Origin: Pelomyxa schiedti
Lineage: Eukaryota > Protista > Evosea
DNA length: 40,021 nucleotides
Assembly: GCA_020536535.1 (NCBI GenBank)
Contig: JAHLWZ010000361.1
Coordinates: 1 to 40,021 of the forward strand
Reading direction: 5' to 3'
The position numbers were made by a program, and so were the translations under genes. The notes beneath the pieces were generated by a model, which worked only from the letters and a program-made list of their open reading frames with translations, did not search any database and was not told where the DNA came from. Below are positions 3,545 to 40,021 of this stretch, one piece after another; positions within the stretch are counted from its first letter, which is position 1; each line of letters opens with the position of its first letter.

Positions 3545-6500
3545 ATGACATCACCACTAACACTACTGTCATACGATGCAATGACAGCACCACCAACACC
3601 ACTGTCAGACGATCAACGCGTGGCCATGATGCTCGAAGCGTGCCGGCGTGTCCCGGTCATGCCCGAGTTTCCGTCACCCACGTGGGACATCAACACTCAC
3701 TTCCATGGTATTAGAGAAACCATGCTTCACATTGCGTGCTCGGGCGGGGACGAGTCGGTTGTTAAGCGGCTCCTCGATGTGGGTGCATCACGCAACCCCC
3801 CGATCGACCCAAACTCAATCGACAAGTATGGTGATACGCCACTGTGTTACGCTGCTTGTTGGGGCAAGGAGGCAGTGGCGAGGATGTTGGTGGCGAGACC
3901 AGATGTGGATGTGAACAAGGGGTGCCCACTGGTCATCGCATGTAGTAGTTGCAGAATGGGTGTGGTGGTGGCGTTGCTTGAGTGCCCACGTGTGGATGTC
4001 AACTTGGTGGTGCAAATAATAGAAAAGCTTGGGGGTCAAACAGCACTGCTCGCAGCTTGTGAGCGGGGATTCGTGGAAGGGGTGAAGGTTCTGCTCAAAG
4101 TCAATGGAATTGACACAAACTGCAAAAACAGAGACGGTGAAACACCACTTGATGTGGCAACAAGATGCAAATTCACTGATATCTGCAACCTCTTGAAGGA
4201 TCACAGATCTCAATCCTCAAGGCCCACCACTGTAAAGCAGCTGAAGAGTAACCCTTCACATCAAATATTAACTTTGCACACACACACATCACTCACACTT
4301 TGTGTTCAAAAGGAGAACTCACAGAACTGAATGCGCGAATCACACAGTTGGAGGATGAAAACGCGAAGAACCTGAAGCGTCTCCAGGATGAAAGAGAATG
4401 CAGATACGTCACCCAACAAAGGTTTCGTGAACTGCAACGGAAATGTTTGTGCCCCCTTCTCCTTTCCTTCCTTCCTTTTCCTCCCTTTGGAGATTGCACT
4501 TCTTCTTTTTTTGCTTCTGACACTTGTTCTCAATCATCAATGTGAACAGATCAAGGGAAACAGAATTCAGAAGTGTGTGTTTGTTGTTGGTCTTATGATA
4601 ATAATATTAATCTCTTTTGACGCATTCCCTCCTTACAGATGGAACTGCAAAGGTTGCAAGAAAAAAGCGTGTTGGACATGACTGCAAAGAACAAGGGTTT
4701 TTCATACCTTTTCTTTCTTCTTGTTTCAATTTCAAAAAAGTAAACTCCTTTGCTCACCCCCCAAACCCTTTTTTCCCTTCTTTCAAAACAGAGCTCATGG
4801 AACTGGAGGCACACATCACAACATTGGAGGAAGAAAGTGCAAGGAACCTGAAGATCTTTTGTGACGAAAGAGAGTCTGAACAACAAAGACTTCGTGATCA
4901 CCAACACTGTATGTGTTGGAGTCAACACCCCTTTTTCAACCTCCCACGCATACATAACATAAGCCACACTCTTCATTATTCTAACTGTCAAGCCAGACAT
5001 GAATCACGTGATGTCACATGTTGAACAAGGAGATGGCTCATGGCGCAACATTCTTCTCCCTGAAAACAACAGCCACAACAACAAGCACTGCAAGCCATCA
5101 AAAATCAGGATTGCCTTTGAGGAATTTGCCTCTTTTGATGAAATTGTGTGTGGCGTCTGTCCTCTTCAAATGGTGCTCTTTCCTCTCTTGCTTGACTTGA
5201 AACCTCCTCTCCTTTCTCGTTTGATTTGTTTCTCACTCTGAAACACAGGTTGTGAAGCTCATTGTTTCAAGGAAGTTTGGGGTGGAACCATCTCAGCAAC
5301 TCATTTTCATTGGTCCCGAAAACAACACCTCTGAAGAAGTGCTGATGGATTCATCCATAACCTTTGATGACATCATTCAACAACAACAACAAGGCAACAG
5401 CAGCACGGACAGAGTTGTTGTTCAATTCCAAGTGCGAATCAAATCAACGGTGTCAATACAAGAGACAGACCTGAAAGTTGTGTCCACACTTGGATCTGGA
5501 TCGTATGGAACTGTTTTCAAGTGCACCTTCCTTCACAACACCGCAACCACAAGCACTTTCTCCTCCTCATCGTCGTCATCATCAGAAACAACGTTTGTGG
5601 CAGTAAAATCGCTTCACGAAATCATCAAGTCTGAGTTCAACATCACACAATTTCAACAGGAAGCTCTGGTGAGTGAGATGGGTGAGGGGGGGGGGGTTCG
5701 TTTTCTTTTCTCTCTGAGTTTGAAAAAATTCCACTCAGAAACTAACTAACACAAAACTCACAGATTTCATCGAGGTTGAGGCACCCCAACATTGTGAGAT
5801 GCCTTGGAACGTGCGTCACGAGCACAGGGTCACTCTGGATCGTCTCTGAACTCATGGAATTGAGCCTCAGACAGCTCCTTCATCATGTTTGTTTTGTTGC
5901 TCCCGCCTTAAAATATATCTATCAATTGCAGAATCTCAATACACACACGCATTCAACACAGAAAACATTGACATTCATGGAAGTTGTTGCAGTCTCTTCA
6001 GGGATTGCCAAAGGAATGACAGCACTCCACATGTTTGTTTCTTTATTGATGTCTTCTAATTCCTTCTTTCTGTTGTTGACCAAAACATTATGTGCCATCA
6101 CCTCCTTCCATGATTGATGACAATTCAACACAGGAGGAATTTCATGCACCGAGACCTGAGCAGCAACAATGTTCTCCTGGATTCTTGTGGAATTCCAAAG
6201 ATTGCTGATTTTGGTGCTGTTATTCCTCATGTCACAACGTTATAACTAAGCATTATCATCATAATTTGTAACTTGTGCGTGCGAATTGCAGGAGTGTCGA
6301 GAGCTCTCCCAACCAACAGTGCTGGCACTGGCACCGCTCTCCTTCGTACTTTCACGAATGGGGCTGGAACACCAGTTTACCTGTCACCACAGATGCACAC
6401 TCGTCACTACGGAATTAAAGGTTGGTGGAAAAGTGTTCATCAGCACATACTTCACACTGATCATCAACCACCTCTAGGTGACATGTGGGAGTTTGCAGTT

Positions 6501-7195
6501 CTGTTGAGTGAAATTCTCAGAGGCACCACACCAGATACCATTGTTCCAAAGGCTGCCACTCAGATTCTTGAGTTCATCAGAGTCCAGAGAACTCGGCTGT
6601 CACCCACGGAAATTGCCGGTTCGTCGTTGCGCAAAAGTCTCCCCCCTTCACTCACTGTGACTTACAACACAAACATACAGAGGTGGACCGGCTTTGCACT
6701 GATGCTGGAGATTATCCCGTTGTGGAGTGCCTCATCCGGAGGAATGCAATCATTGAGGCACTGCGGTTGGACCAAGAGTTGAACAACACGCACCCTGCGT
6801 GCGTTGGTCAGTTCTCACTCGTTGTTGAGTCTTGCCTCTCAATCCTCGGTTCGTTCTTCCCCACCTGACATGTAATTAAGATTGTACTATATGTCGTCCA
6901 CCCAACTCACCAACACACACACACAGAGATCAACCGGCCATCGTTTCCGGTGATTGAGAGAATGCTGATGACATGTGCCGAGATCGTGTTCGCGAATTCT
7001 CGCAACACCACCACCGCAACAACCGCCGCCAACACCACCGCCAACGCTCCCATGATTGACAACCGCGACGTGGCCGCACACATCACCACGTGCCTCGCAA
7101 ACATGGCCGCGTCGTTCCCTGGCCGCCGCAACAACAACCTTCACACATCTTCATCTCCATCGTCAACAACAAGCTCTTCCAGGTCGTCGTCATGA
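3545..7195 (+). CDS. Ankyrin repeat - coiled coil - ubiquitin-like - TKL-type protein kinase (paralog K1; ankyrins in one uninterrupted exon)
   Basis: Ankyrin motifs ETMLHIAC, DKYGDTPLCYAA, GQTALLAAC, NRDGETPLDVA; coiled-coil exons; Ubl-like VKLIVSRKFGVEPSQQLIFIG; kinase GSGSYG, VAVK, FQQEA, HPNIV, HRDLSSNN, DFG (split by an intron), GTPVYLSPQ, NRPSF. GT-AG introns throughout; stop at 7193-7195. Confidence 0.9.
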
Positions 7196-7520
7196 AAAAC
7201 AAAAACGCAAGCAATGTTGTTAGATACTCCCACAAAGTCACACACTTGTGAATGTGTTTGTGTGTGGTGTTGTGGGGGTGAGTTGATCATCATGACGAAG
7301 ATGTTGTGTTGTTGTTGCGGCCAGGGAATGATACGGCCATGTTTGCGAGGCACGTGGTGATGTGTGCGGTCACGTCGCGGTTGTCAATCATGGGAGCGTT
7401 GGCGGTGGTGTTGGCGGCGGTTGTTGCGGTGGTGGTGTTGCGAGAATTCGCGAACACGATCTCGGCACATGTCATCAGCATTCTCTCAATCACCGGAAAC
7501 GATGGCCGGTTGATCTCTGT
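6923..7520. repeat. Inverted repeat formed by the near-identical last exons of convergent K1 and K2 (arms about 6923-7138 and 7308-7520)
   Basis: Both encode IERMLMTCAEIVFANSRNTTTATTAANTTANAPMIDNRDV.AHITTCLANMA.SFPGR with only a few mismatches. Stop codons are 94 bp apart. Confidence 0.9.
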
Positions 7521-10500
7521 GCGTGTGTGAGTCGGGTGGAAGGCATATTATGAGATTAACTTAAGTTTAACAGCTATATCGATGGACCCACTTGTATATT
7601 CTTGTCCAGGCCCCCGTATTTTACGCAGTTGTTATTTAAAATGGAGCGGTGGTGGAGGGGGGAAATAACGAACCGAGGATTGAGAGGCAAGACTCAACAA
7701 CGAGTGAGAACTGACCAACGCACGCAGGGTGCGTGTTGTTCAACTCTGGGTCCAACCGCAGTGCCTCAATGATTGCATTCCTCCGGATGAGGCACTCCAC
7801 AACGGGATAATCTCCAGCATCAGTGCAAAGCCGGGTCACCTCTGTGAGGGTGTGTGGTTGTGAGTTACAGTTGGGAAGGGAGAGACTTTTGCACAACAAC
7901 GAACCGGCAATTTCCGGGGGTGCCAGCTGAGTTTTCTGGACTCGAATGAACTCAAGAATCTGAGTGGCAGCCTTTGGAACAATGGCCTCCGGTGTGGAGC
8001 CCCTGAGAAGTTCACTCAACAAAACTGCAAACTCCCACATGTCACCTTTGAGATGATGGATGATCAGTGTTTAAGGGTGGTTGGTATGGTTTGAACAATT
8101 CAATTTTCCGAACCTTTAATTCCGTAGTGACCAGTGCGCATCTGCGGTGACAGGTAAACTGGTGTTCCAGCCCCATTCGTGAAAGTCCGAAGTGCAGTGG
8201 CAGCACCATTGCTTGGGAGAGCTCTCGACACTCCTGCAATTCACACACACAAGTTATTACATTATGATGGCACCGTGAAACATTGTTGAGGCATAAAAAT
8301 AAGAAAATACCAAAATCAGCAATCTTTGGAATTCCACAAGAATCCAGGAGAACATTGTTGCTGCTCAGGTCTCGGTGCATGAAATTCCTCCTGTGTTGAA
8401 TCGTCGTCAATTATGGGATGGGAGGAGATGGCACAGAAAAAAAATCTGGTCAACAAACAAAAAGAGGGAACCGAGAGGAACATCAAGAAAGAAGGAAACA
8501 AACAAACATATGGAGTGCTGTCATTCCTTTTGCAATCCCTGAAGAGACTGCAACAACTTCTGTGAATGTCAACTTTTTCTGTGAAGTGTGTGTCGATATT
8601 TATATATTGCCAATTGAGTGTGAGCCCAACAAACATGATGAAGGAGCTGCCTGAGGCTCAATTCCATGAGTTCGGAGACGATCCAGAGTGACCCTGTGCT
8701 CGTGATGCACGTTCCAAGGCATCTCACAATGTTGGGATGTCTCAACCTCGATGAAATCTGTGTGTGTGATGGTGAGTTTCAATGAATGAATTGTGTGCAT
8801 TTCAAGATCAATGAGAGAGAAAACGAAAGTCGCTCACCAGAGCTTCCTGCTGAAATTGGTTGATGTTAAATTCACTCCTTATGATTTCGTGAAGTGCTTT
8901 TACTGCCACAAATGTTGTTGTTTCTGATGATGATGAGGAGGAAGATGTTGCTGCTGCAGTGTTTTTGTGGAGGAAGGTGCACTTGAAAACAGTTCCATAC
9001 GATCCAGATCCAAGTGTGGAAATAACTTTCAAGTCTTTCTCTTGTATTGTCATGCTTGATTTGATTCGCACTAGTATTGACACAACAACTCCGTTTGTGC
9101 TGATGCTGTTGCCGCTGTTGCCTTGTTGTCGTTGTTGAAGAATTTCTTCCAAGGTTCTGAATGGATCAGTCAACAGCTCCTCCGAGCACTCATCTGAACC
9201 AACAATGAAAATGACTTGTTGAGTTGGTTCAACCCCAAACCTCCTGGAGATGATAAGTTTCACAACCTGTGTTTGTTCGTTTGGTTTGTTTCAAGGAAAA
9301 AGAGGGGCTTCATTCAAGGGAGGGGAAAGGGCACCATTTGAAGAGAACAGGATCCACACACAATTTCTTCGAAAGAGGGAAGATCCTCAAACACAACCCT
9401 GACTTGTGATTGCTTGCAGTTGTTGCAGTTGTTGCAGTTGTTGTCGCTGTTGTTTTCAGGGAGAAGAATGTTGCGCCATGAGCCATCTCCTTGTTCAACA
9501 TGTGACATCACGTGAGTGGTGTCTGGCTTTACAGTTAGATTGATTGTGTGTAGATATCGCGTGTGTGTATCGTGTGTGTGTGGTGGTTGAGAATGGGGGT
9601 GTGTTGACTGAACACAAACAGTGTTGGAGATCACGAAATCTTTGTTGTTCAAGTGCTCTTTCGTCACAAAAGATCTTCAGGTTCTTTGCACTTTCTTCCT
9701 CCAATGTTGTGATGTGTGCCTCCAGTTCCATGAGCTCTGCTTTTGTAGTAAAAAGGGAAAAAAAAAAGGGTTGGGATGACCAATGAGTTCAATCAGTTGA
9801 ATTCGAAACAAGAAGAAATAGAAAATGGAGGAGGAGAAAAGGTGTTGACAAACCGTTGTTCTTTGCAGTCATGTCCAACACGGTTTTTTCCTGCAACCTT
9901 TGCAGTTCCATCTCAATGGATGATGTGTTGTCAAAAGAGAATATTTTTATTATTTATTATTGTTATTGCAAGACAAACAACAAACACACACTTCTGAATT
10001 CTGTTTCCCTTTATATTCATCCACATTGATGAGAGGTGTCAGAAAAACAAAAAAAAAAAGAAGCAATCGCTGAGAAGGGAGGAAAAGGAAAGGGGAGGAG
10101 TGGGCACAAACAGTTCTGTTGCAGTTCATGAAACCTTTGTTGGTCGACTTGTCTGCATTTTCTTTCATCATGGAGAAGCTTCAGGTTCTTTGAATTTTCA
10201 TCCTCCAATTGTGTGATTCGTGCCTTGAGTTCTGTGATCTCATCTTTTTGAAAACAAAGTGTGGGGAGTGCCAGTGCACAAAGTTTGAATTTGGTTTTAG
10301 GAACAGGGAGGGGGGTGGGGGAATTTGTCTCAACTCTTCTGCTGTTTTGCCTCGATTTCCCAGGAGGCTCTTCCTTGTCTCCCAACTGTTTGTGGTGCTT
10401 GCATTGATTGTGGTTGTGATGAGGTGAGTGATGAAGATGATGATGACTTGTTTGCGGTGGAGGGTGGTGGTGGGTTGTTTTGAGGCAATGAGAATGAAGA

Positions 10501-12758
10501 CTCCAGCAAGTCTTGGGCAACAAGATTGTGGGGTTGTTGTTGTTGTTGTGCTATTTTGGGAGTGGTGGAGACTGTCCGCGTTGCAATTGTTGTTTTTGCT
10601 GTGGCAGCAGGGATTTTGCGACACACAGATTGGAACAGTTGCTGGACTTCATCATTCTGGGAGTACTCAACAGCTGTTTTTCCCTCTTTGTTCTGTTCCA
10701 ACAGGAAAATTATAACACATAACAAGCAACACAGGGAAAAACACCACACCTTGATGTGAGTGCCAGTGCCCACACAAGACAGAAGTTGTTTCACAATTTC
10801 ATGATTTCCCCTTCTGGAGGCAATGTGAAGTGCGGTCTGAGAGAAAGATGAAAATTAAGTTTAAGTGTGTCAAACAACAGACAAAGGAAAGGAAACACAA
10901 AGGACATTCACATACATCACCCTTTTCATTTGACAGAGACCCCCAAGAAAAGTAGAGATGACATTGAGGAATGCAAAAAAAAAAAAAAAAAAACAAGCTC
11001 ATACTTCCTGAAAAAAAAAAGAGTTAATTAATTAAAGAAAGAATCAAGGTGAGTTCATGTACAATCTGGTGGCCAGTAGTGTAAAGCAGTAAAAATTTCC
11101 CGAAAAGTTAGAAACAAAAAGCTTGGCAGGTTGTGTGTTTACTTACTCCCTGAGATATGGCAGCCCAAAAAGAAAGAAAGAAAGTGTCACAGAAAATTGA
11201 AGCAATAAAAGGGTGGGTTTACACACATACTAAAGCATGCCATAAAGACATGGAGAGAGATAGAGCAAAGAAAAGAGTGACAATTGAAGCAAGTCATAGA
11301 AATCGATGAATAACAACGCCATAAAAGGATGGGTTTACGCACATGCTAAAGCATGCCACAGAAACAGAGAGCGCAAAGCAAAGAGTGAAAATTGAAGCAA
11401 GTCATAGAAATCGATGAATAACAACATAATAAAAGGATGGGTTTACACACTCCCTGAGTTTATCACAGAGAGCAAAGCAAAGAGTGAAAATTGAAGCAAG
11501 TCATAGAAATCGATGAATAACAACGCAATAAAAGGATGGGTTTACACACACGCTAAAGCATGCCATAAAGACATAGAGAGAGATAGAGCAAAGCAAAGAG
11601 TGAAAATTGAAGCAAATCATAGAAATCAATGAATAACAACGAAATAAAAGGATGGGTTTACACACACGCTAAAGCACGCCATAAAGACATGGAGAGAGCA
11701 AAGCAAAGAGTGAAAATTGAAGCAAGTCATAGAAATCGATGAATAACAACATAATAAAAGGGTGGGTTTACACACATACTAAAGCATGCCATAAAGACAT
11801 GGAGAGAGATAGAGCAAAGAAAAGAGTGACAATTGAAGCAAGTCATAGAAATCGATGAATGACGACACAATAAAAGGAGGGGTTTACACACACACTAAAG
11901 CATGCCACGGAGACAGAGCAAAGCAAAGAGTGAAAATTGAAGCAAATCATAGAAATCGATGAATAACAACGCAATAAAAGGATGGGTTTACACACACGCT
12001 AAAGCATGCCATAGAAACAGAGAGAGCAAGGCAAAGAGTGAAAATTGAAGCAAGTCATAGAAATCGATGAATAACAACACAATAAGGGTGGGTTTACACA
12101 CATACTAAAGCATGCCATAGAGAGAGCAAAGCAAAGAGTGAAAATTGAAGCAAGTCATAGAAATCATGAATAACAACGCAATAAAAGGATGGGTTTACAC
12201 ACAGTCTAAGGCATGCCATAGAGAGAGCAAAGCAAAGAGTAAAAATTGCGCAATAAAAGGATTGAGATTATGAGTACATACAGTCTCCCCCTGGATTTCA
12301 GGTTTTTAAAGGAAAGAGAATGTAAACCTATAATCAGGATGGATAGTAGTAGTATCACACACAATCTGTTTGTGAAGCAAGAGATACAAGTGTGGTTAGT
12401 GACGAGGCACATCAACCAGTGGCGTACTTGAGAATTGACATCAATATTCATTGACAACAGGAATTCGACACACCGTGGTTTCTCCCCCCACGTCGCTGCA
12501 TGCAACGCTGTCTGTGGTGTATGTGTGTGTGCAAAAAAACCGAATTGTTGATGCTTGTGGGGAAAAAAAAACATAGAAAAAAAAAGATTTGTTCAACATT
12601 CACACCACTCGTTCGTCATTAACGGAGTTTAGCAGGCCGCGGTCACCGGCCAACAGACGCTCCAGTGCGTAGGTGTTGCCGCCATACGCGGCATCGAACC
12701 ACTCAGTGGGTCCGACGCGTGGACCCCCCGTGGGTGAAGTTGTTGTTGCTGCTGCCAT
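7290..12758 (-). CDS. Ankyrin repeat - coiled coil - ubiquitin-like - TKL kinase (paralog K2) with an expanded microexon array
   Basis: ATG 12758 MAAATTTSPTGGPRVGPTEWFDAAYGGN..LLNSVNDERV; exon 2 TALHAATWGEKPRCVEFLLSMNIDVNSQ ends 12428; exon 3 TALHIASRRGNHEIVKQLL starts 10836; then NKEGKTAVEY, coiled coil, Ubl and kinase motifs as in K1; stop at 7290. Confidence 0.9.
10916..12365 (-). other. K2 microexon array: 14 single-codon exons, one 9-nt (or 3-nt) exon and one 6-nt GD exon
   Basis: AG-exon-GT units in transcript order: ATT 12363-65; GGGGAGACT 12282-90; ACT 12203-05; TAT 12102-04; CGT 11996-98; TGT 11892-94; TAT 11776-78; CGT 11666-68; CGT 11550-52; GGA 11451-53; CAT 11343-45; TAT 11227-29; GGA 11147-49; ATT 11063-65 (weak donor gtacat); GAA 11005-07; GGTGAT 10916-21. 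Donors are gtgtgt, gtgcgt, gtaagt, gtatgt or gtatga. Confidence 0.8.
11195..12250. repeat. Tandem repeat of about 100-120 bp units (about 9-10 copies); each unit is one intron plus one 3-nt exon
   Basis: Recurring core gagtgaaaattgaagcaagtcatagaaatcgatgaataacaac..ataaaaggatgggtttacacacNNNctaaagcatgcc. Confidence 0.95.
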
Positions 12759-13517
12759 AGGTGGGCGGCCAGTGGGGTGAGAACCAAAAGATCAAAAAAA
12801 AAAAAAGATCTGGTTCTGTCTAGAGAAGAAGCCAGAACCATTTTTTTGGTGCTAACACCAAGACAAGGGTGGATTGGGTGGCTAATACCAAAATAAATAA
12901 ATAAATCCCTAATTTGTGGCTGGCAAAACAAGTTTTAGTGTGGGTGATTGTTTGGGGGTCACCAAAAAAAAAAGGTGCCCCCTCCTCATCAGTTAACAGG
13001 TAGTGACGGAAGAACCAGCAGCTGGGTATCCTTTCGAGTGGTGAGTATGATGGATGGAGTAAAAGCAAGAACATGATACAACTAGAGCATGCAACAAAGC
13101 ATGCCAAACAACAACAAGCAACCTCCACTTGAAGAGAAACAGAGGACGCGGAGATACCGGCATGATAGTGGCATGGTGATTACACTACAAGAGTTACTGC
13201 AGAATCGCGTTCTCAGCCGGCACTGAAGCGGACATTTCCGGCACTGGTAGCATGCATACTGCCAACAGGGATTAGCACAGAAATGATGGGAATCATGCAT
13301 ACAAACGTTCATACAAATGCAGCGGGAATGCTAGATATGTAGAAGCTTCGAAGCTCGGAAATTCATTCCAAAGCTATGTGGCGTTAGTATTCCGCTTGGT
13401 TGTATTTGTTTTTATTGGCTTGTATTTACATTTCATTAAGCAGTTAATTCTATTGGGATTAATTGCACGCACGTGGTAAAAAAGACAGGGGGGTGGGTGG
13501 GTGAGTGGAAAAGAAAC

Positions 13518-14345: not shown

Positions 14346-16556
14346 TCATTCATCACTGCTGCCACTTGTATCACTTGAATTTTCGTTGGGCTTGTTGTTG
14401 ATATACCAGTCAACGTCAGCCTTTGTGAGCCCAACGGTTTTCATTGTGACAGATGTGTGAAGTGGAGAGACCAACACCCATTGCATGAAGTGGTCCCTCA
14501 CAACAGAGGCTGTCATTTCAGGGAACACACGCATCAGCATCTTCCACATTCCCACTGAAACAGAGGTAATTTTGTGATTGTCTGCCAGTCTGGTTATCTC
14601 GTTCAACTTGACATGGAACTGGTTGATGAGCCACTCAGTGCAACCAACTCTCTTCTGGTGCATCATCATCGCGAGCAAGTTGTTGTGATTCACCTTGATT
14701 TGGTCTTCAGTCATGACGAATTCATTGATGAGCCACTTGACAACTTTTCCAGAATTAACATAATCACATGCAGAAAAGGCCTCTGCAACGTCAGATGAAG
14801 AGAAGTCGCCATAATTGACAATCTGGCGGGTCTGTGAAACATCGGCATCTTCAATCAATCTCTGGACGATAGAGGACCTGTGGGAAATGCATGAATTGAA
14901 TTGCCGCAGCAAAACCAATGTGAATGTGATGAACTGACAGTTTTCGACAGCAGAGAGCACTGCAGTTTCCCTGATGTTGCGCAACATTGCATGTGAAAGG
15001 AACCACTGAATGCCCCCGATTCCACGGTTGCCCCTACCACCACCACAAATCTCACTGAAAATCCTCTCTGTGCTGCTGGGATCATCATCGGAATTCACAC
15101 CATCCATCACGTGGAACTTGCTCTCCAACCACTCTGCCACTTCAGTGTTGTTGTTTGAAAGGCTTCTTGCAAGACACTTCCTGAGGTTGGGTTGCGTTGG
15201 AGGCATTTTTGCTTTTTCCAACAACAACATCACCACTGCCACACTGTCTTTCTTGTTCCCACATGCATCGTAGACCACTTGGAAGCTGACCGGGCTGAGG
15301 GTTCCAAAGTTTTCAAACAGCCACTCAATGAGCCTCACATCAGCGATTTTGTTGCATGCATGTGACAAAAGTTTTTGTGTTGGTTCAACATGAAAGCTTT
15401 TGATCACCCACATGAGTCCCCTGCTGTTTTCACACTGTATTGTGGAGAACTCCGTCACTGAGAAGGTTTTCTTGATCCACTCACATCCTTCCTCGAAGTT
15501 GTTGTTGTTGTTTTTGGAGTCACCGCTGCTGTGGTGCTGTGAACAATTCCTAATGAATTTTGCAAGAACTGCCCTGCCGTAGTATTCCATCACATCAGAA
15601 CTCTCCAGGCCGAACACCTTGATGCAAAGCTTCACAGCTTCCAAGAAGACCTCAGGGGCACACTGACTGTGAGGCGTGACAATCTTTTCCTCACAGGAGT
15701 CCACCACACCAAGAAGGGATGATGATGCCATCCACTCTGCAGTGTCGATGCGACCACGAAAAAGAGCAGCTTGAAATGGTTTCATGAGCTCCCATGGCTC
15801 TGTTCCACCCACACCACCAGCAAACCTTGACATCACCCACTTCACAACATCCAAATGGCCACCACTGCACGCTGCATGCAAAATACTGGTGGAATGGTCA
15901 TCCATTTCCTTGATTTCATCCAAAAGGTCAGACTCACCGACCACAGGCCACCTCAGAGCACCACCCCTCCACGGTGTATTGCCATTGTCAACGAGTTCCT
16001 GTGCCAGTGCCAGGTGTCCCCCTTTGTGTTGAAAGTATTAATTTGTTTTTGTCATTCAACTTTTGGAGTTTTATAATAATAATAAAAATAATAAAAATGC
16101 GCATGCCACTCTACGATCTGGTTCTATTAGCAAGAGTACTTGTTATTAATTACCTTCACAAAGACCACCAAGCACAGTGAGGCACTCCCTTGCGTTGTTC
16201 CTCGTCCTCTTGCTTCCCACAATCCATTCCACGCACCTCACGCTCCCCACCACCCCGGCACACCCAAGAGCGAAATACCGCGACGTCAACCTGCGGGTGG
16301 ACCCCCCGACGCACGGCCACCACAACTTAGAGCCCGGCGCACTCACGCCCATAATCGCCCTGCAGGCCCGCGGCACCAGCGGGAACAGCGCGTCGGCGAG
16401 TCCCACAATCCAGCAACACTCGGGCCTGGTCATCTGCGGCCCGCGGGCGGCTGTTGGGTCCAACACAATCGGAACCACCACGAAGTCCCACACGACACGC
16501 GACACCATCATCACCCGTTCTGTCATTCGACTCTTCGCCACTCCATCTTCGCTCAT
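14346..16556 (-). CDS. Large protein with degenerate ankyrin-like helical repeats (lineage-expanded family), two exons
   Basis: Exon 1 MSEDGVAK...ECLTVLGGLCEG|gt, intron about 16022-16153, then GHLALAQELV... continuing into the 532-aa ORF with ILHAACSGGHLDVVKWV and NNTEVAEWLESKF repeats. Confidence 0.75.
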
Positions 16557-17236: not shown

Positions 17237-18292
17237 TCATTCCTCACTGTCACTGCTGTCACTCGACGACGATGATGGGTTGTTTGGAGCAGGGGGTGGT
17301 TGTTGGTGTGTTCCTTTTGTTTTTGCTGGGAACAGCTGCCCCACTTCATCATTGTAGCGGGTAGCAAGAGCTGTCTTTCCATACTTGTTCTGTGATGTGA
17401 TTAACCCCCACATGCACACGCACGTGGTAAAAGTCACGGGTGGGTAGTGGAAAAGAAAAAAAAAACCTTGATGTTTGTGGCAATCCTCACACATGAGAGC
17501 AGTCGTTTCACAATTTCAACCTCTCCTCCTCTGGAGGCTATGTGAAGTGCAGTCTGAAAGGGGATAGAGAAAATTAAGTGTCAAACAACAAAGAAAGGAT
17601 GCTCATACATCGCCCTTTGATTCAACAGATTTGATTCAAGAGAGAAGAATAAAGTGAGGTAAATAAGTTGATGAATACTCAATAAAAAAAAGGGTTACAC
17701 ACGAACTGGGGTTATAGGAGGGAGAAATGAAGTCAGAGAATTTTCAATTCAATGCAAATAAAAGGGTTGGAGGATACATGCTAAACGCGCCGCAAGACAG
17801 AGCAAGTGAAAATCGAAGCAAGTCAGTCAGAGAAGGGAAAACAGGAAAGGTTTTACACACATCCTGTGAAGTATGTGTTTGTCAGTGTGAGAATGTGCTC
17901 AACAAACGAACCTGTAAATTGGCGTCGATATTCACTGACAACAGGAAATCAACACACTGTGAGCTCCCTCCCCACGTGGCTGCATGTAATGCTGTCTGTG
18001 TGTTGTGTTGGTATACAAAGCCCACAAAACGAAAAACAAAAAGTTAATATCATCAGTTCATAGAATCGTAACAAAAAATATCCAATAAATTAATTATTAT
18101 GAAAATTGCACGTGTGCACACAACAACCTCTCCTTTTCGTTCGTTTACAGAGTTGAGTAGCCCTGGGTCGAGCGCCAGCATCGCTTGCAACTTGTCGGCG
18201 TTGCCATTAAACGCAGCATCGAACCACTCGTCGGGCCCAACACGTGGCCCCGGCCCGCTTGTGCTTGTGGCGCTCGTTGATGCTGCTGCCAT
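17237..18292 (-). CDS. Short ankyrin-only paralog (A4) with four microexons and no kinase
   Basis: Exons 18292-18128 (MAAAST..LNSVNERKGE), 17995-17912 (TALHAATWGG..ANLQ), microexons D/H/F/GD, 17553-17467 (TALHIASRGG..TNIK), 17389-17237 (NKYGKTAL..SDSEE*). Confidence 0.8.
17609..17863 (-). other. A4 microexon set: GAT (D) 17861-63, CAT (H) 17778-80, TTC (F) 17703-05, GGCGAT (GD) 17609-14
   Basis: cag GAT gtgtgt; tag CAT gtatcc; cag TTC gtgtgt; aag GGCGAT gtatga. The joined product ANLQDHFGDTALH matches the ankyrin consensus N-x-x-d-x-x-G-x-T-A-L-H exactly. Confidence 0.85.
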
Positions 18293-18528
18293 CACAATGA
18301 TGATGATGGTTCTGGTAATGAAACTGATGAATTCTCCAAAGGATCTCGATCTCCACCGATTAACTAAAATAAATAAACAAACTTCGCTTCAGAACGAACA
18401 CGTACGTCACTCACAGCCCTACAACCAAAATCAGGTGCACTCAACCAAACACAATCAACAAATCTGAGAGAAAGGATTTCTCGTTTGATCGACACAAATA
18501 ATGCACACTCCCTGGTCTTTGCTGTTGC

Positions 18529-25200: not shown

Positions 25201-25802
25201 CAATTCAAGGAGTGAAAATTGAAACAAGTCAGTGAAATTGATGAATAATGAAAAGGGGTGGGGCCTTGGAAGATACACACATTCTAAACACAGAGTGAAG
25301 AAGAGAAAAATGACAAGTCAGAAGGAAACAGGAAGGTTTTTACACACATTCTGTGAAGTGAGAAAACAAGTTTGTTAGTGTGATGAGGACAAGTAGTGCC
25401 CAACAACAAACAAACCTTGGCATTGACGTTGATATTCATTGACAACAGGAACTCAACACACTGCGTTCTCCCACTTGCAGTGGCCGTATGCAACGCTGTC
25501 TGTGCGCGTGCCAATTATCAGCTTGGATGGAGTCCAAAACAAAAAAGGAGTGCAAGAAATAAAAAAAAAAAAAAATATTATGTGCGAAAGGTAAGAGGTG
25601 GGTGGTGCCCAAATCGATTTTATTTATTTTCTAGGCATAGGCACATAAAACCAACCGCATGATTCCACAGGTCTACGGAGTTGAGCAGCCCGGGGTCGGC
25701 GGACAGCATCCCCCGCAGCTTGTCTACGTCTCCAGATTGTGCGATGTAGAACCACTGATTGGGCCCAACCGGCGCGCGTCTCGTTGCGGCCGATGCAGCC
25801 AT
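22244..25802 (-). CDS. Ankyrin repeat - coiled coil - ubiquitin-like - TKL kinase (paralog K3); the Ubl region falls in gap 23899-23998
   Basis: ATG 25802 MAASAATRRAPVGPNQWFYIAQSGD; exon 2 25499-25416 TALHTATASG..NVNAK; microexons; exon 3 from 24920 TALHIACRAEN; NKSGKTALE; kinase GSGSYG, VAVK, HRDLSSNN, DFG, YLSPQ. Confidence 0.88.
24985..25350 (-). other. K3 microexon set: AAT 25348-50, AAT 25281-83, AAT 25179-81, GCA 25064-66, GGTGAT 24985-90, plus one decayed unit near 25100-25115
   Basis: cag AAT gtgtgt; tag AAT gtgtgt; tag AAT gtgcgt; cag GCA gtatgg; aag GGTGAT gtgtgt. Product NAK-N-N-N-A-GD-TALH. Confidence 0.8.
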
Positions 25803-25946: not shown

Positions 25947-28900
25947 TCAGTGGAATGTGGTGCTTGTTGCATTGCTGGTGGTGACAGTGTTGCTGTTGCT
26001 GTTGTTGCTGCTGTTACCCTTCAACTGAATCAGGTTCTGATAAGCGTGGCCAGCGGGATTGTCGATGGGGAACTTGGCAATGAATTCACCCAGCAATGCC
26101 TGGACCGCCTCGGCATTGTTGTCATTCCCGCTGCATAGGGCCTGATCAACCGCGGCATAGTTCTGCAGCATCACTTGGGTCTTGCTGTCAACTCTGTGTG
26201 CGTGTGTGGAACGAGTTAGAAAAGAACAGGAAAGATGAAAGAAGCTTCTTGGGTGGCTCACTTGAATGTGGACCCGACGAATTCATGAACCAAGATGGGA
26301 TCCTGGAAGCCGCGGACCTGTTGTGTGTGCGAGTGGTTTCGTTGTGTGAGGAATGGAATCTGGGAGAGGGAGAACACACAAAGATCTTGCCGAGGGCCCT
26401 GAATGAAAATGATTTGCAACAGGGATTCCGGATGCTGTCGGTAACAAGAACAGCGGTTCCGAACTCTTTGTTCAACGGTTCTAATCTCGCAGCAAGGTTG
26501 ACGGTGTTTCCTGTGATCATTGTTATTCTTGATATTTCGGAAGTGTTTCAGACACACCAAGTACAGTGTAATTCAATCTCTGGCTTGATCTGTAATTGAA
26601 TATATATATCAGAAGAATGATGGACGAGAGATAAATATTCAACCCGACATTGCCGGCCTTTACTTCTCCGTAGTGAAGCTGTGTGTTATTTAGAGATAAT
26701 ATTGAGGGTTGAACACTCACCCCAATGCGAATGTGCATGGTGATGTTGAACTTTTGAAGGAACATGGCATTTAATTTTGCGAGTTCTTCAAGGATTTCGT
26801 CCACTGCAACACATGAACGCATTTCGGGATCATTCAGAGTTTCTGGGCAACCCCACAGGGCCATGATAGCATCTCCGATGTACTGAACGTTGTGTGAGAT
26901 TGTTTTGCTGGAATGCAAAGGAACCAACCTTGTCAATTGTGCCTGAATTTCTCGTGATGATTGTTGAGAATGCTTCAAACATCACTGATAGAACTTCGAT
27001 GATGGTCTGAGCACCGAAGGCATCCATGTTTTTCGTCTGGAAATAAAGAGCGAGTGAGTAAAGAGCCATTGAGGCGGCGAGATATTCATCATACAAAATC
27101 GACAACGTCAAGGAACATCACAACGCACTTCATTCCGCGGAATCCCACCACTGGGCGCAGTTTGTATTTACATAGGTGTCTGCATGAGTATTAGTTTGCA
27201 GGAAAGTACTTCTGAGGAATTCTTGCACCTCACAACTTGTGTTGGAACGTATCTTAAGTAAGTAAGAATAGAAGAGAGAAAGCGGGGGAAAAAAGGGGGA
27301 CACTCACTGACTGAATGACTCCAGAGTGCTCTGCATGCTGCACACTTCAGTATTCAACTGTGTGAAACGGTCATAACCAATTACTGGGGATTTAATAATT
27401 ATTATGCACACCATGTCAATCTCTTTGATTGCACTTTTCTTCAAAACTGTGTAGCTCTCAGTCCTGCGTGCTTTTAAGTAAAAACAAAAACAAAAACAAA
27501 AACAAAAACAAAAACAAAAACAAAAACAAAAACAAAAACAAAAACAAAAACAANNNNNNNNNNNNNNNNNNNNNNNNNNNNNNNNNNNNNNNNNNNNNNN
27601 NNNNNNNNNNNNNNNNNNNNNNNNNNNNNNNNNNNNNNNNNNNNNNNNNNNNNAAAAACAAAAACAAAAACAAAAACAAAAACAAAAACAAAAACAAAAA
27701 CAAAAACAAAAACAAAAACAAAAACAAGCAGGGGGCACAACCTCGAGAATTTTCCCCTGGAAACACCATGCAACTTTGTAGTCACTCTCTTGAGGGCCGA
27801 TGCCAGAACAACAGCCAACGAAATGCTCAGGACAATTGTGCAAAGAGCGATAAACAGTTCCACAGCGAGGACTCCCCACAACGACTTGTGGGCATCTGCC
27901 TCCGCCTTGTCCTGCTGTGCTGTGATGTTCGAAAGGAAATCCTGCGTGTGAAACGAAAAGCCAATCAATCAGAAATCGAAGGGAACGAAAAAATGGCGAA
28001 GGGGTTTTTCTACGCACGCTTTCAGGAGTGACGAGAGTCAACCAGAGTACGAGGCCACCGTCCGCAGTTATGGGAACGACGTCGGCGTAGCATGGACCCT
28101 TGTCGGACAGAGTGACGACGAAATGTGCCTCCTGATGGATCTGATTCGTGTGATGGAGCCACGATTGTGCCGTGAGCCCAATCGACTCCTCTGAGCTATC
28201 TGTTGATTTCATGATTGTTCCATTTGGAAATGATATGTTCAGTCCTGGTGTGGCAGCCATCAACTTTGTTTGTGTAAGAGATATGCAAAGGTCAGTGCGA
28301 ATTGGGCTTTGGCGATTTGGAACCTGAAGTGTTGAATCAACAAGAAAGGCACTTCCGGTCTCGGTCAGGTTCATTGATGTGAAGTACTTCCTCATGGATA
28401 CAAGTGTGATTGTGATTTGGATGACTGCCGGGACTGGGATACCCATGACTCTCTTTGTGTAACCCATTGTGTACGCATTGGAGAAGTCTTTGTAAACGTT
28501 CGTCCATGCTCCGTCTATTGCTGAAAGGCCTGATTTCCTGTGGAATTGTTGATTTTCTTTTATTTGGTGAAATGGCAACACACCACCAAGCCTGTTTTGT
28601 GAAATTGTAATTTGGCAGACTTCCACTGATATTTTTTGTGGCCACGCCATCAATATACTTGTAGGACACAAGGGACAAACTGATTACGCTGTCATAAGCC
28701 ACATAGAATCCACCTGGAAATGAAATTAGTGAACTGATGTGCAGAGGCAATCGTACTTGAGAAGCGTTCATTGTAATCATGGTCACCATTCGAATTTTGG
28801 AAAGCAACCATCTTTTTCAAATTAATTGACAAAAGAGCAGAGATACACTCACGAGATTCACAAAGTCTTTCCACCCAATGTTTATTGGCTTCAGAATCTG

Positions 28901-39293: not shown

Positions 39294-40021
39294 CCGGTGA
39301 CAATGACGAGGAGGAGGAAGTGGTTGCAGTTACGTTGGGAAGGAAGGTGCATTTGAAAACAGTTCCATACGACCCAGACCCAAGTGTGGACACAACCTTC
39401 AGGTCTGTCTCTTGGATTGACACCGTTGATTTGATTCGAACTTGGAATTGAACAACTGTGTTCGTGCTACCGTTTCCTTGTTGTTGATGACGATGAATGT
39501 CATCCAAGGTTCTGTACGAGTCATTCAACAGCTGTTCCTCAGAGTTGTTGTTTTCTAGACCAATAGTGAAAATAACTTGCTGAGATGGTTCCACTCCAAA
39601 CTTCCTTGAAATGATGAGCCTCACAACCTGTGTTTGTTTGTTGGTTTCCCCCCAGTATGCAGTGAGAAACAAAGCAAACAAGAGGGGAGGAGGTTTCAAG
39701 AGAGGAAAGAGCACCATTTGAACAGGACAGAAGCCACACACAATTTCATAGAAAGCGGGAAAGTCTTCGAACACAATCCTGATTTGCGATTGCTTGCAGT
39801 TATTGTTGTTGTTTTCAGGGAGAATGTTGCACCACGTGCCTTCTCCTTGTTCAACATGTGACATCACATGATTTGTGTCTGTTTGACAGTTACAATATTG
39901 GTGGTGCCGTGTTGTGTGTGGTTGGTTGAGAAAGGGGAAGGGGATGGTAATTAGTGAGCAGAACAAACAGTGTTGGAGATCAAGAAATCTTTGTTGGTCT
40001 GATGCTCTTTCATCACTTTCT
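39294..40021 (-). CDS. Second variant of the K3 Ubl-region fragment (other bubble branch)
   Basis: Near-identical to 1-729 with SNPs and indels (CKQSQ vs CKRSQ, FYEIV vs FNEIV, one fewer CAA); same 121-bp flanks. Confidence 0.85.

Follow-up and report, generated by a model that had tools for sequence, protein, structure and literature searches.

How does a eukaryotic gene come to carry, between two ordinary exons, a tandem array in which every repeat unit holds only a single codon between a 3' and a 5' splice site? To answer this question, we examined a 40,021-nucleotide stretch of Pelomyxa schiedti DNA (contig JAHLWZ010000361.1, assembly GCA_020536535.1, scaffold C361; hereafter the window). 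The genome comprises 52,367,397 bp in 5337 contigs, matching the published assembly (PMC8887013), and other contigs are named here by C and their number. The preliminary description had proposed that repeat units of roughly 110 bp duplicate in tandem and keep a near-identical intron core, whereas the 3-nt exon takes six states. It further proposed that these cassettes undergo birth and death by unequal crossover, with selection for new codons.

In the first step, we tested whether the repeat is real. Tandem Repeats Finder reported periods of 104, 116, and 226 bp over 11256-12248, with a score of up to 1383, and a second repeat search gave 9-10 copies. The interval 11195-12250 holds ten head-to-tail units of 99-116 bp. 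The variable triplet is read on the minus strand, as TTTAG-NNN-GTGTGTAAACCC, and each unit reads the AG of a 3' splice site, 3 nt, and a GTGTGT-type 5' splice site. The six triplet states are exactly those of the preliminary description; they encode six amino acids without a stop, and AG and GT are intact in 10 of 10 units. Each intron has GTGTGT(A), a TGAC-type putative branch site inside the conserved core, a pyrimidine tract, and TTTAG or CTCAG. Chance occurrence of AG-NNN-GT was rejected, as about 0.15 are expected per 1.6 kb against 10-25 observed. A plus-strand gene was also rejected because only repeat-derived ORFs were found on that strand, and an Rfam scan of the window gave no match.

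The array could also be an artefact of assembly or whole-genome amplification, with repeats mis-joined from single-cell MDA data. Indeed, Logan short-read contigs of the three DNA runs break between about 11233 and 12191, and one contig joins 11470 to 12041; hence, the copy number and unit order rest on the published hybrid assembly. However, that assembly used MiSeq 2x300 reads, Nanopore reads, and k up to 121, which is longer than a unit, and the same architecture appears at about 30 loci with locus-specific unit sequences and codons. An artefact could alter copy number or unit order, but not create the cassettes, and we consider this explanation very unlikely.

In the second step, we placed the array in its gene. 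It lies between ankyrin repeats 2 and 3 of an ankyrin-kinase gene, at the inter-repeat D-x-x-G-x-T turn, as judged by alignment to the consensus turn. Ank_2 and Ank Pfam hits were obtained on the annotated paralog model P0013, and family members carry precomputed Ank domains. An AlphaFold2 model of residues 1-140 of the paralog model P0025, made without an alignment, was of low confidence (pLDDT 52) and too poor to use beyond the helix pattern. Table 1 summarizes the features of the locus.

Table 1. Features of the ankyrin-kinase locus and of related sequences in the window, in transcription order for the gene carrying the array.
Feature	Position	Strand	Sequence or content	Support
Exon 1	12606..12758	-	Start codon and N-terminal capping repeat, ending ..NSVNDERV	ORF and translation; matches family profile A1 in a search of the genome
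Exon 2	12428..12511	-	Ankyrin repeat 2, TALHAATW.. to ..NIDVNSQ; ends in phase 0	Translation; family alignment; Pfam Ank hits on P0013
3-nt microexon candidate	12363..12365	-	ATT (Ile), first after exon 2	cag-ATT-gtgtgt; same place in most paralogs; most arrays begin with ATT
9-nt microexon candidate	12282..12290	-	GGGGAGACT (G-E-T)	Equivalent exon included in NCBI models of paralogs; P0025 and P0013 carry GMP and GKP here
Tandem array	11227..12205	-	Ten cassettes of one codon plus a 96-113-nt intron	Repeat searches; unit alignment
Cassette codon 1	12203..12205	-	ACT	
Cassette codon 2	12102..12104	-	TAT	
Cassette codon 3	11996..11998	-	CGT	
Cassette codon 4	11892..11894	-	TGT	
Cassette codon 5	11776..11778	-	TAT	
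Cassette codon 6	11666..11668	-	CGT	
Cassette codon 7	11550..11552	-	CGT	
Cassette codon 8	11451..11453	-	GGA	
Cassette codon 9	11343..11345	-	CAT	
Cassette codon 10	11227..11229	-	TAT	
3-nt microexon candidate	11147..11149	-	GGA (Gly), gtaagt 5' splice site; first of four terminal microexons conserved across the family	Invariant island AG-GGA-GTA.G in 17 paralogs
3-nt microexon candidate	11063..11065	-	ATT (Ile)	Conserved across paralogs; CAG-ATT-GTA island in the alignment of 17 paralogs
3-nt microexon candidate	11005..11007	-	GAA (Glu)	Paralogs have GAA, CAA or GAG
6-nt microexon	10916..10921	-	GGTGAT (Gly-Asp), supplying the G-x of the D-x-x-G-x-T turn	GGTGAT in 18 of 21 paralogs, two synonymous variants (GGCGAT, GGTGAC), one GGTGAA; included in NCBI model P0025
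Exon 3	10750..10836	-	Ankyrin repeat 3, TALHIASRRGNH.. to ..THIK; starts in phase 0	Translation
Downstream exons	10194..10590	-	91-nt GT..AG intron 10244-10334 removed	Single-cell RNA contig covering 10590-10335 and 10243-10194, 100% identical
Kinase domain exons	7636..9263	-	Same gene	Pfam PK_Tyr_Ser-Thr / Pkinase pieces matched exon by exon
Array-less paralog	17554..17911	-	GAT, CAT, TTC and GGCGAT, rebuilding D-H-F-G-D between ..NIDANLQ and TALH..	Introns carry the core of the array
Intron core, single occurrences	14040; 17806; 25212		Core as given on the plus strand	Next to single microexon candidates of three paralogs in the window

In the third step, we searched the whole genome for the same design. 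An exact pattern search (TTAG-NNN-GTGTGTAAA) was too strict and gave 17 hits, almost all from this locus and from C1194, a collinear sister locus. The broader search found about 36 clusters with about 380 candidate cassettes, all at this same position of one gene family or on small array-only contigs. The design recurs in about 30 related genes, whose annotated proteins are the Pelo_ proteins of P. schiedti. Likewise, all 105 matches within the genome lie in arrays on contigs that carry the same gene family or on small array-only contigs. A mobile introner, which would leave near-identical copies at unrelated positions in unrelated genes, was therefore rejected.

The two outcomes named in the preliminary description as refuting it were then tested on this family, and neither occurred. 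Regarding the first, exon-site diversity is about 5-7 times intron diversity. Within the array of the window, the triplet is the most variable 3-column window, with a mean diversity of 0.54 against 0.07-0.08 for the intron columns, although a second hot spot lies inside the intron (columns 26-28, GCG/GTG/ATG/TCG, diversity 0.45). The triplet ranks first in 16 of 19 arrays, with a diversity of 0.64, 0.68, and 0.32 at codon positions 1-3 against 0.12 in the intron. Additionally, nearest-neighbour units differ at 0.39 per codon site against 0.053 per intron site. Regarding the second, all 206 homology-defined units keep AG and GT, that is, 0 changes in 824 sites, whereas about 55 were expected at the intron substitution rate (P near 1e-25 if sites are independent). 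As the units are related by descent, the P values are upper bounds on significance. Only one stop codon occurs among the 206 triplets against 9.2 expected from positional composition, although one cassette on C219 reads TGA. Old arrays with diverged introns of irregular length (C368, C1120, and C530) still keep AG-NNN-GT.

These results bear on the possibility that the array is only an intronic minisatellite, in which one long intron runs from the 9-nt to the 6-nt exon and the AG-NNN-GT motifs are unused relics of one duplicated ancestral microexon. The DNA has the form of a minisatellite, which does not exclude an exon function, and most NCBI models stop at the arrays. However, this explanation offers no reason for the hypervariable triplet, and it does not explain the invariant splice dinucleotides, the retention of AG-NNN-GT in old arrays, the scarcity of stops, or the conserved terminal microexons. 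Furthermore, the array-less paralog rebuilds the D-H-F-G-D-T turn only with its 3+3+3+6-nt exons. We regard the minisatellite explanation as improbable, although no RNA contig covers 10600-13100 in the single RNA run examined, and inclusion of any cassette of this array in mRNA is therefore unproven.

Growth by tandem duplication is supported by the 226-bp two-unit period, by repeated multi-codon motifs in other arrays, and by the homology of the unit to the single-copy microexon introns of array-less paralogs. It is further supported by C1194, which is 87-97% identical to the window locus and has 7 cassettes instead of 10, with mostly different codons. Two orthologous introns are 95/96 and 77/77 identical, whereas their codons differ (CGT versus CTT and TAT versus TTT). 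A tree of the units from both loci was unresolved, with 12 of 13 inner branches open, and unequal crossover, as inferred in the preliminary description, cannot be told apart from replication slippage.

Selection for new codons is favoured, but it is not separated from the alternative that the loop residues drift almost freely, helped by CpG mutability, while the introns are held constant by purifying selection (all splicing information for a 3-nt exon must be intronic), gene conversion, or both. In this array, 8 of 10 codons (CGT, TGT, CAT, and TAT) are linked by CpG transitions, CpG is depleted in the window (observed/expected 0.66), and an intronic CpG site is nearly as variable; CpG decay explains most of the states here. 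Array introns are also more alike between the two sister loci (95-100%) than the rest of the gene (87-91%), so intron constraint or gene conversion inflates the codon/intron ratio, and the intron core is conserved across arrays that are otherwise only ~70% alike. Conversely, codon changes across the family are richer in transversions (79 ts / 121 tv) than intron changes (489 / 402), unlike CpG decay, and gene conversion should homogenise the triplet together with the intron. Codon position 3, where T to C is synonymous for most of the codons used, changes much less than positions 1-2 (0.15 against about 0.5), and pN is 0.47, pS 0.16, and intron divergence 0.058 (pN/pS about 2.9). However, position 3 is also the -1 base of the 5' splice site. 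Overall, drift without selection appears unlikely.

We consider it somewhat more likely than not that the array is a run of ten real, phase-0 single-codon exons in the loop (beta-hairpin finger) between ankyrin repeats 2 and 3. In this explanation, the ancestral state, still seen in the array-less paralog, encodes the five-residue turn with four microexons. One cassette was then copied head to tail, singly and in two-unit blocks, and each copy lengthens the loop by exactly one residue without any risk of a frameshift. Because every ~100-nt intron carries its own splicing signals, the spliceosome can recognise the introns rather than the exons. We infer that neighbouring introns are removed one after the other, as the two splice sites flanking a 3-nt exon cannot both be occupied at once. 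A complication is that CGT and TGT codons create a competing GT one base into the exon. After duplication, the codon changes much faster than the intron, most likely through selection for loop diversity, and as a result each of the ~30 family members carries its own germline-encoded loop. If all candidates are used, the loop of this gene has 19 residues between exon 2 and exon 3: I, GET, TYRCYRRGHY, G, I, E, GD.

A less likely alternative is that the exons are real but used optionally. The NCBI model Pelo_4155 (P0025) of a paralog joins exon 2 to a 9-nt exon, a 6-nt exon, and exon 3, skipping all 3-nt cassettes, which gives exactly the canonical ankyrin loop length. This may merely reflect an annotation pipeline that could not place 3-nt exons; however, the models P0006 and P0009, truncated inside the following intron, join the first ATT to exon 2, showing that the pipeline could place at least that junction. 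As all cassettes are in phase 0 with near-identical splice sites, any 5' site can pair with any later 3' site without breaking the frame, and one gene could yield many loop variants, as in Dscam or a DARPin library. Against this, short introns would suggest intron definition, under which exon skipping is usually rare, and the strong conservation of the terminal GGA, ATT, and GAA in 17-21 paralogs fits constitutive use. Moreover, the folds of the units were not better than shuffles (z = 0.04, 1.46, and -0.15), giving no sign of a docking/selector structure. It remains possible, though speculative, that variable inclusion in about 30 ankyrin-repeat signalling proteins provides each gene, and perhaps each cell or nucleus, with a repertoire of loop variants, a splicing-based receptor diversification system in an amoeba that lives with several prokaryotic endosymbionts.

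Single 3-nt exons flanked by AG/GT, often missed by annotation and with conserved flanking introns, are already documented in animals and plants (PMC7821500, PMC8042270, PMC8831610), as isolated exons or small clusters. In our literature searches, we found no report of 10-25 consecutive single-codon exons generated by tandem duplication, and nothing relevant on microexons in Archamoebae. The micro-exon genes of Schistosoma and other flatworms (DeMarco et al. 2010) appear to build most of their coding sequence from symmetric exons of 6-36 nt, whereas here only one ankyrin loop of intracellular-type kinases and E3 ligases is built this way, and exons 1-4 and the kinase exons are ordinary. In LRR exon arrays and collagen 54-nt exons, a protein region grows by unequal crossover, but the unit encodes a structural repeat of 18-28 residues rather than one residue inside a loop. 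Dscam1-type exons form a tandem array of frame-compatible exons at one position of a recognition domain, but they are ~120-300 nt and are chosen one at a time through RNA pairing. In recursive splicing, a 3' splice site is directly followed by a regenerated 5' splice site, but nothing is left in the mRNA, whereas here 3 nt would remain at every step.

If the cassettes are spliced as read, these are the longest known runs of single-codon exons, up to about 25 in a row, and they would push the lower limit of exon size as a routine, repeated event. They show a simple way for a loop to grow, shrink, and change one residue at a time, and they mark a fast-evolving family of ankyrin-kinase and ankyrin-U-box proteins that looks like a recognition repertoire. 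A HMMER scan with exon 1 and word-index searches of protein sequences returned only NCBI genome-based models of P. schiedti, which are not independent transcript evidence. Interestingly, most of these models are truncated in the intron after the first microexons, and the arrays explain why many published gene models of this genome are truncated after about 90-130 residues.

Within the window, a head-to-tail repeat was detected by Tandem Repeats Finder with periods of 104, 116 and 226 bp and scores up to 1383, and a second repeat search gave 9-10 copies. The informative strand is the minus strand, on which each unit reads as a 3-nt triplet, then GTGTGTAAACCC.., about 100 nt of pyrimidine-rich sequence, and ..GGCATGCTTTAG (one unit ends ..AAACTCAG) before the next triplet. 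The six triplet states, the absence of stops and the intact AG and GT in every unit, as claimed in the preliminary description, are all correct. The intron core given there is the plus-strand reading of ..TGACTTGCTTCAATTTTCAC.., which recurs once each beside single AG-NNN-GT sites of three paralogs.

The window is contig C361 of an assembly of 52,367,397 bp in 5337 contigs, in agreement with the figures published for Pelomyxa schiedti, a free-living anaerobic archamoeba (52.4 Mb, 5337 scaffolds and 7.43 introns per gene; PMC8887013). The database proteins of the family are NCBI 'Pelo_' proteins of P. schiedti. The table summarizes the features of the gene and its surroundings. Exon 3 is followed by low-complexity, coiled-coil and kinase exons, and all junctions are phase 0. 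A single-cell RNA contig, 100% identical, covers two downstream segments with the 91-nt intron between them removed. The gene is therefore expressed and spliced, although nothing in that run covers 10600-13100, and there is no transcript evidence for any cassette of this array.

Features of the array-bearing gene, its paralogs and the surrounding sequence (window coordinates unless a contig is named; for the cassettes, the first base on the plus strand)
Feature	Position	Strand	Description
Tandem repeat	11195-12250	-	Ten units
Exon 1	12758-12606	-
Exon 2	12511-12428	-	Ankyrin repeat 2, ending ..NIDVNSQ
3-nt microexon candidate	12365-12363	-	ATT
9-nt microexon candidate	12290-12282	-	GGGGAGACT
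Cassette 1	12203	-	ACT
Cassette 2	12102	-	TAT
Cassette 3	11996	-	CGT
Cassette 4	11892	-	TGT
Cassette 5	11776	-	TAT
Cassette 6	11666	-	CGT
Cassette 7	11550	-	CGT
Cassette 8	11451	-	GGA
Cassette 9	11343	-	CAT
Cassette 10	11227	-	TAT
3-nt microexon candidate	11149-11147	-	GGA
3-nt microexon candidate	11065-11063	-	ATT
3-nt microexon candidate	11007-11005	-	GAA
6-nt microexon	10921-10916	-	GGTGAT
Exon 3	10836-10750	-	Ankyrin repeat 3, starting TALH..
RNA-covered segments	10590-10335 and 10243-10194	-	Single-cell RNA contig
Intron core, single occurrences	14040, 17806 and 25212		Beside AG-NNN-GT sites of three paralogs
Array-less paralog	17911-17554	-	Microexons GAT, CAT, TTC and GGCGAT
Regions of truncated gene models	12606-12758, 17897-18295 and 25407-25796
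Segment collinear with contig C1194	14698-2264		87-97% identity
DNA contig junction	11470 / 12041		Run X2
Ankyrin-kinase gene	3545-7195	+	Tail-to-tail paralog
3' ends of the two genes	6887-7553		Inverted duplicates
Mirror ORFs	6950-7195 and 7290-7493	+ and -	Same peptide
Mirrored TRF repeats	7009-7045 and 7398-7434
Window ends	1-724 and 39305-40016		Match C1194 2599-2890 and 8069-8794
Microsatellites	27480-27553 and 27654-27727		(AAAAAC)x12
Array L028	C219:8000-13450	-	TGA in the sixth cassette
Older array L044	C1120:14356-15945		Irregular introns
Older array L050	C530:181685-182219		Irregular introns
Older array L025	C418:4606-6250		Irregular introns

To assess whether 3-nt exons are credible, we used the array-less paralog of the same window as a control. 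Between ..NIDANLQ and TALH.. it has cag-GAT-gtgtgt, tag-CAT-gtatcc, cag-TTC-gtgtgt and aag-GGCGAT-gtatga, which together supply D-H-F-G-D, exactly the D-x-x-G-x that precedes T-A-L-H in the ankyrin consensus. Without the three 3-nt exons, that repeat is three residues short. Additionally, the last four microexons of the array-bearing genes (GGA, ATT, GAA and GGTGAT) are present in 17-21 paralogs and stand out as conservation islands together with their own splice signals; the variants of the 6-nt exon are mostly synonymous (GGCGAT and GGTGAC). The introns of the control's cassettes carry the core of the array, so the array unit is a copy of an ancestral 'codon plus intron'.

However, the database proteins are genome-based models made with Augustus, PASA and EVM, and most of those of the family (among P0002, P0003, P0006, P0007, P0009 and P0013-P0020) are truncated (87-136 aa) inside the intron after the first microexons. 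Pelo_4501 (P0002, 904 aa) is a chimera that reads through a microexon intron and fuses the 18295 gene with the neighbouring 14346-15944 ORF. One full-length paralog model, Pelo_4155 (P0025, contig C328), goes from exon 2 to a 9-nt exon, a 6-nt exon and exon 3, resulting in exactly the canonical loop length. This either shows that the 3-nt cassettes are optional or reflects the inability of cDNA aligners to place 3-nt exons. Interestingly, in Pelo_4155 the same N-terminal ankyrin module with a microexon loop is fused to SAM and U-box domains instead of a kinase; the module is therefore shared between different signalling outputs.

In the genome-wide search, a profile of exons 1-2 found about 35-40 genes, and the repeat unit gave 105 matches. 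All of them are on contigs that carry this family or on small array-only contigs, which argues against a mobile element. A scan of these regions for AG-NNN-GT with a GTRHGT donor resulted in about 36 clusters with about 380 candidates on the coding strand, whereas the chance expectation is about 0.15 per 1.6 kb. The arrays hold 3 to about 25 cassettes, and they usually start with ATT plus a 9-nt G-x-x exon and end with GGA. The codons are mainly NNT after a TAG acceptor (TAT, TTT, CTT, ATT, GAT, CAT, CCT) and NNA after a CAG acceptor (GGA, CGA, TCA, GAA), giving loops rich in Y, F, L, I, D, H, G and P. Codons beginning with GT, as well as GCT, GGT, AGT and most codons ending in G or C, are nearly absent, which suggests splice-site constraints on which residues a 3-nt exon can encode. 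The older arrays L044, L050 and L025, with irregular introns of 49-114 nt, encode Gly/Tyr/Asn-rich loops, in contrast to the F/L/D/H-rich young arrays, and sub-families seem to have their own residue composition.

The preliminary description had proposed duplication of cassettes with selection for new codons, and had named two outcomes that would count against it; neither occurred. In the first test, we compared exon and intron diversity in 19 arrays with at least five regular units. The mean pairwise diversity was 0.64, 0.68 and 0.32 at codon positions 1-3 and 0.12 in the intron, and the triplet was the single most variable 3-column window in 16 of 19 arrays. In the array of this window, the figures were 0.54 against 0.08. 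For nearest-neighbour unit pairs, they were 0.39 against 0.053 per site, a ratio of 7.4. By Nei-Gojobori counting, pN was 0.47 and pS 0.16. Codon changes were enriched in transversions, with 79 transitions to 121 transversions, against 489 to 402 in introns. In this particular array, however, CGT, TGT, CAT and TAT are one CpG-transition series, the CpG observed/expected ratio of the window is 0.66, and an intronic CpG is almost as variable. Furthermore, array introns are more similar between this locus and its sister locus on contig C1194 than the rest of the gene, and intron constraint or gene conversion therefore contributes to the contrast. A special selective regime at the triplet is shown, whereas positive selection is likely but unproven.

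In the second test, which concerned the decay of splice dinucleotides, units were found by homology alone, using nhmmer profiles centred on the junction. All 206 near-full-length units in 18 arrays keep AG and GT, although 54.6 hits were expected in those 824 sites at the arrays' own intron substitution rates (P about 1e-25 if independent; units share ancestry, so the P value overstates independence). The 'double-length' intervals of the first scan turned out to hold cassettes with intact AG-NNN-GT and a GTGTGC or GTAAGC donor. Arrays whose introns have diverged in sequence and length (48-100 nt; contigs C368, C1120 and C530) still keep the motif. Stops are scarce, with one TGA in 206 against 9.2 expected from positional composition, although this test is weak because most codons end in T. 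The only stop-like cassette seen (ctcag-TGA-gtgtgt), in array L028, is probably derived from CGA or GGA; that array is preceded by a 100-N scaffold gap joined to a kinase fragment.

The duplication model is well supported. The 226-bp period is a two-unit block, and other arrays show repeated multi-codon motifs. Contig C1194 is collinear with segment 14698-2264 of the window apart from one extra family gene, and it is either a diverged haplotype or a recent segmental duplicate. Its copy of this gene has seven cassettes (CAT CTT TAT CTT CTT GGA TTT) where the window has ten. Two clearly orthologous introns are 95/96 and 77/77 identical, while the codons in front of them differ (CGT against CTT and TAT against TTT). 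Short-read contigs break inside the array, so the copy number rests on the published hybrid assembly, which used MiSeq 2x300 reads, Nanopore reads and k up to 121. One DNA contig of run X2 skips 570 bp, or about five units, which could be a collapsed repeat path or a real shorter allele and bears on copy-number polymorphism.

As for the mechanism, which is inferred, each ~100-nt intron is self-sufficient, with a GTGTGTAA donor, a CTGAC/ATGAC-type putative branch site inside the conserved core, a pyrimidine tract and TAG or CAG. This fits recognition by intron definition, and it also fits stepwise removal of adjacent introns, since a donor and an acceptor 3 nt apart cannot both be bound at once. 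The intron shows no stable or unusual RNA fold. Unequal exchange or slippage between near-identical introns adds or removes whole codons, and codon substitutions then diversify the loop. Inclusion of the cassettes in mRNA is likely but unproven, and full inclusion would put 19 residues between exon 2 and exon 3. All searches were carried out exon by exon or with database proteins.

Single 3-nt exons are documented in animals and plants, and schistosome micro-exon genes appear to have tandem exons of 6-36 nt. We found no report of runs of single-codon exons, or of microexons in Archamoebae, in the literature searched, and the P. schiedti genome paper (PMC8887013) does not mention them. Pending RNA proof, we regard the array as taking the microexon or micro-exon-gene theme to an extreme, with runs of single-codon exons.

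In the surrounding sequence, the plus-strand ankyrin-kinase gene and the minus-strand gene studied here are tail-to-tail paralogs; their 3' ends are inverted duplicates of each other with mirrored ORFs and TRF repeats. Both ends of the window match the same stretches of C1194 at 75-85% identity; a family repeat therefore sits at both contig ends. Additionally, the two (AAAAAC)x12 microsatellites are identical and lie 174 bp apart.
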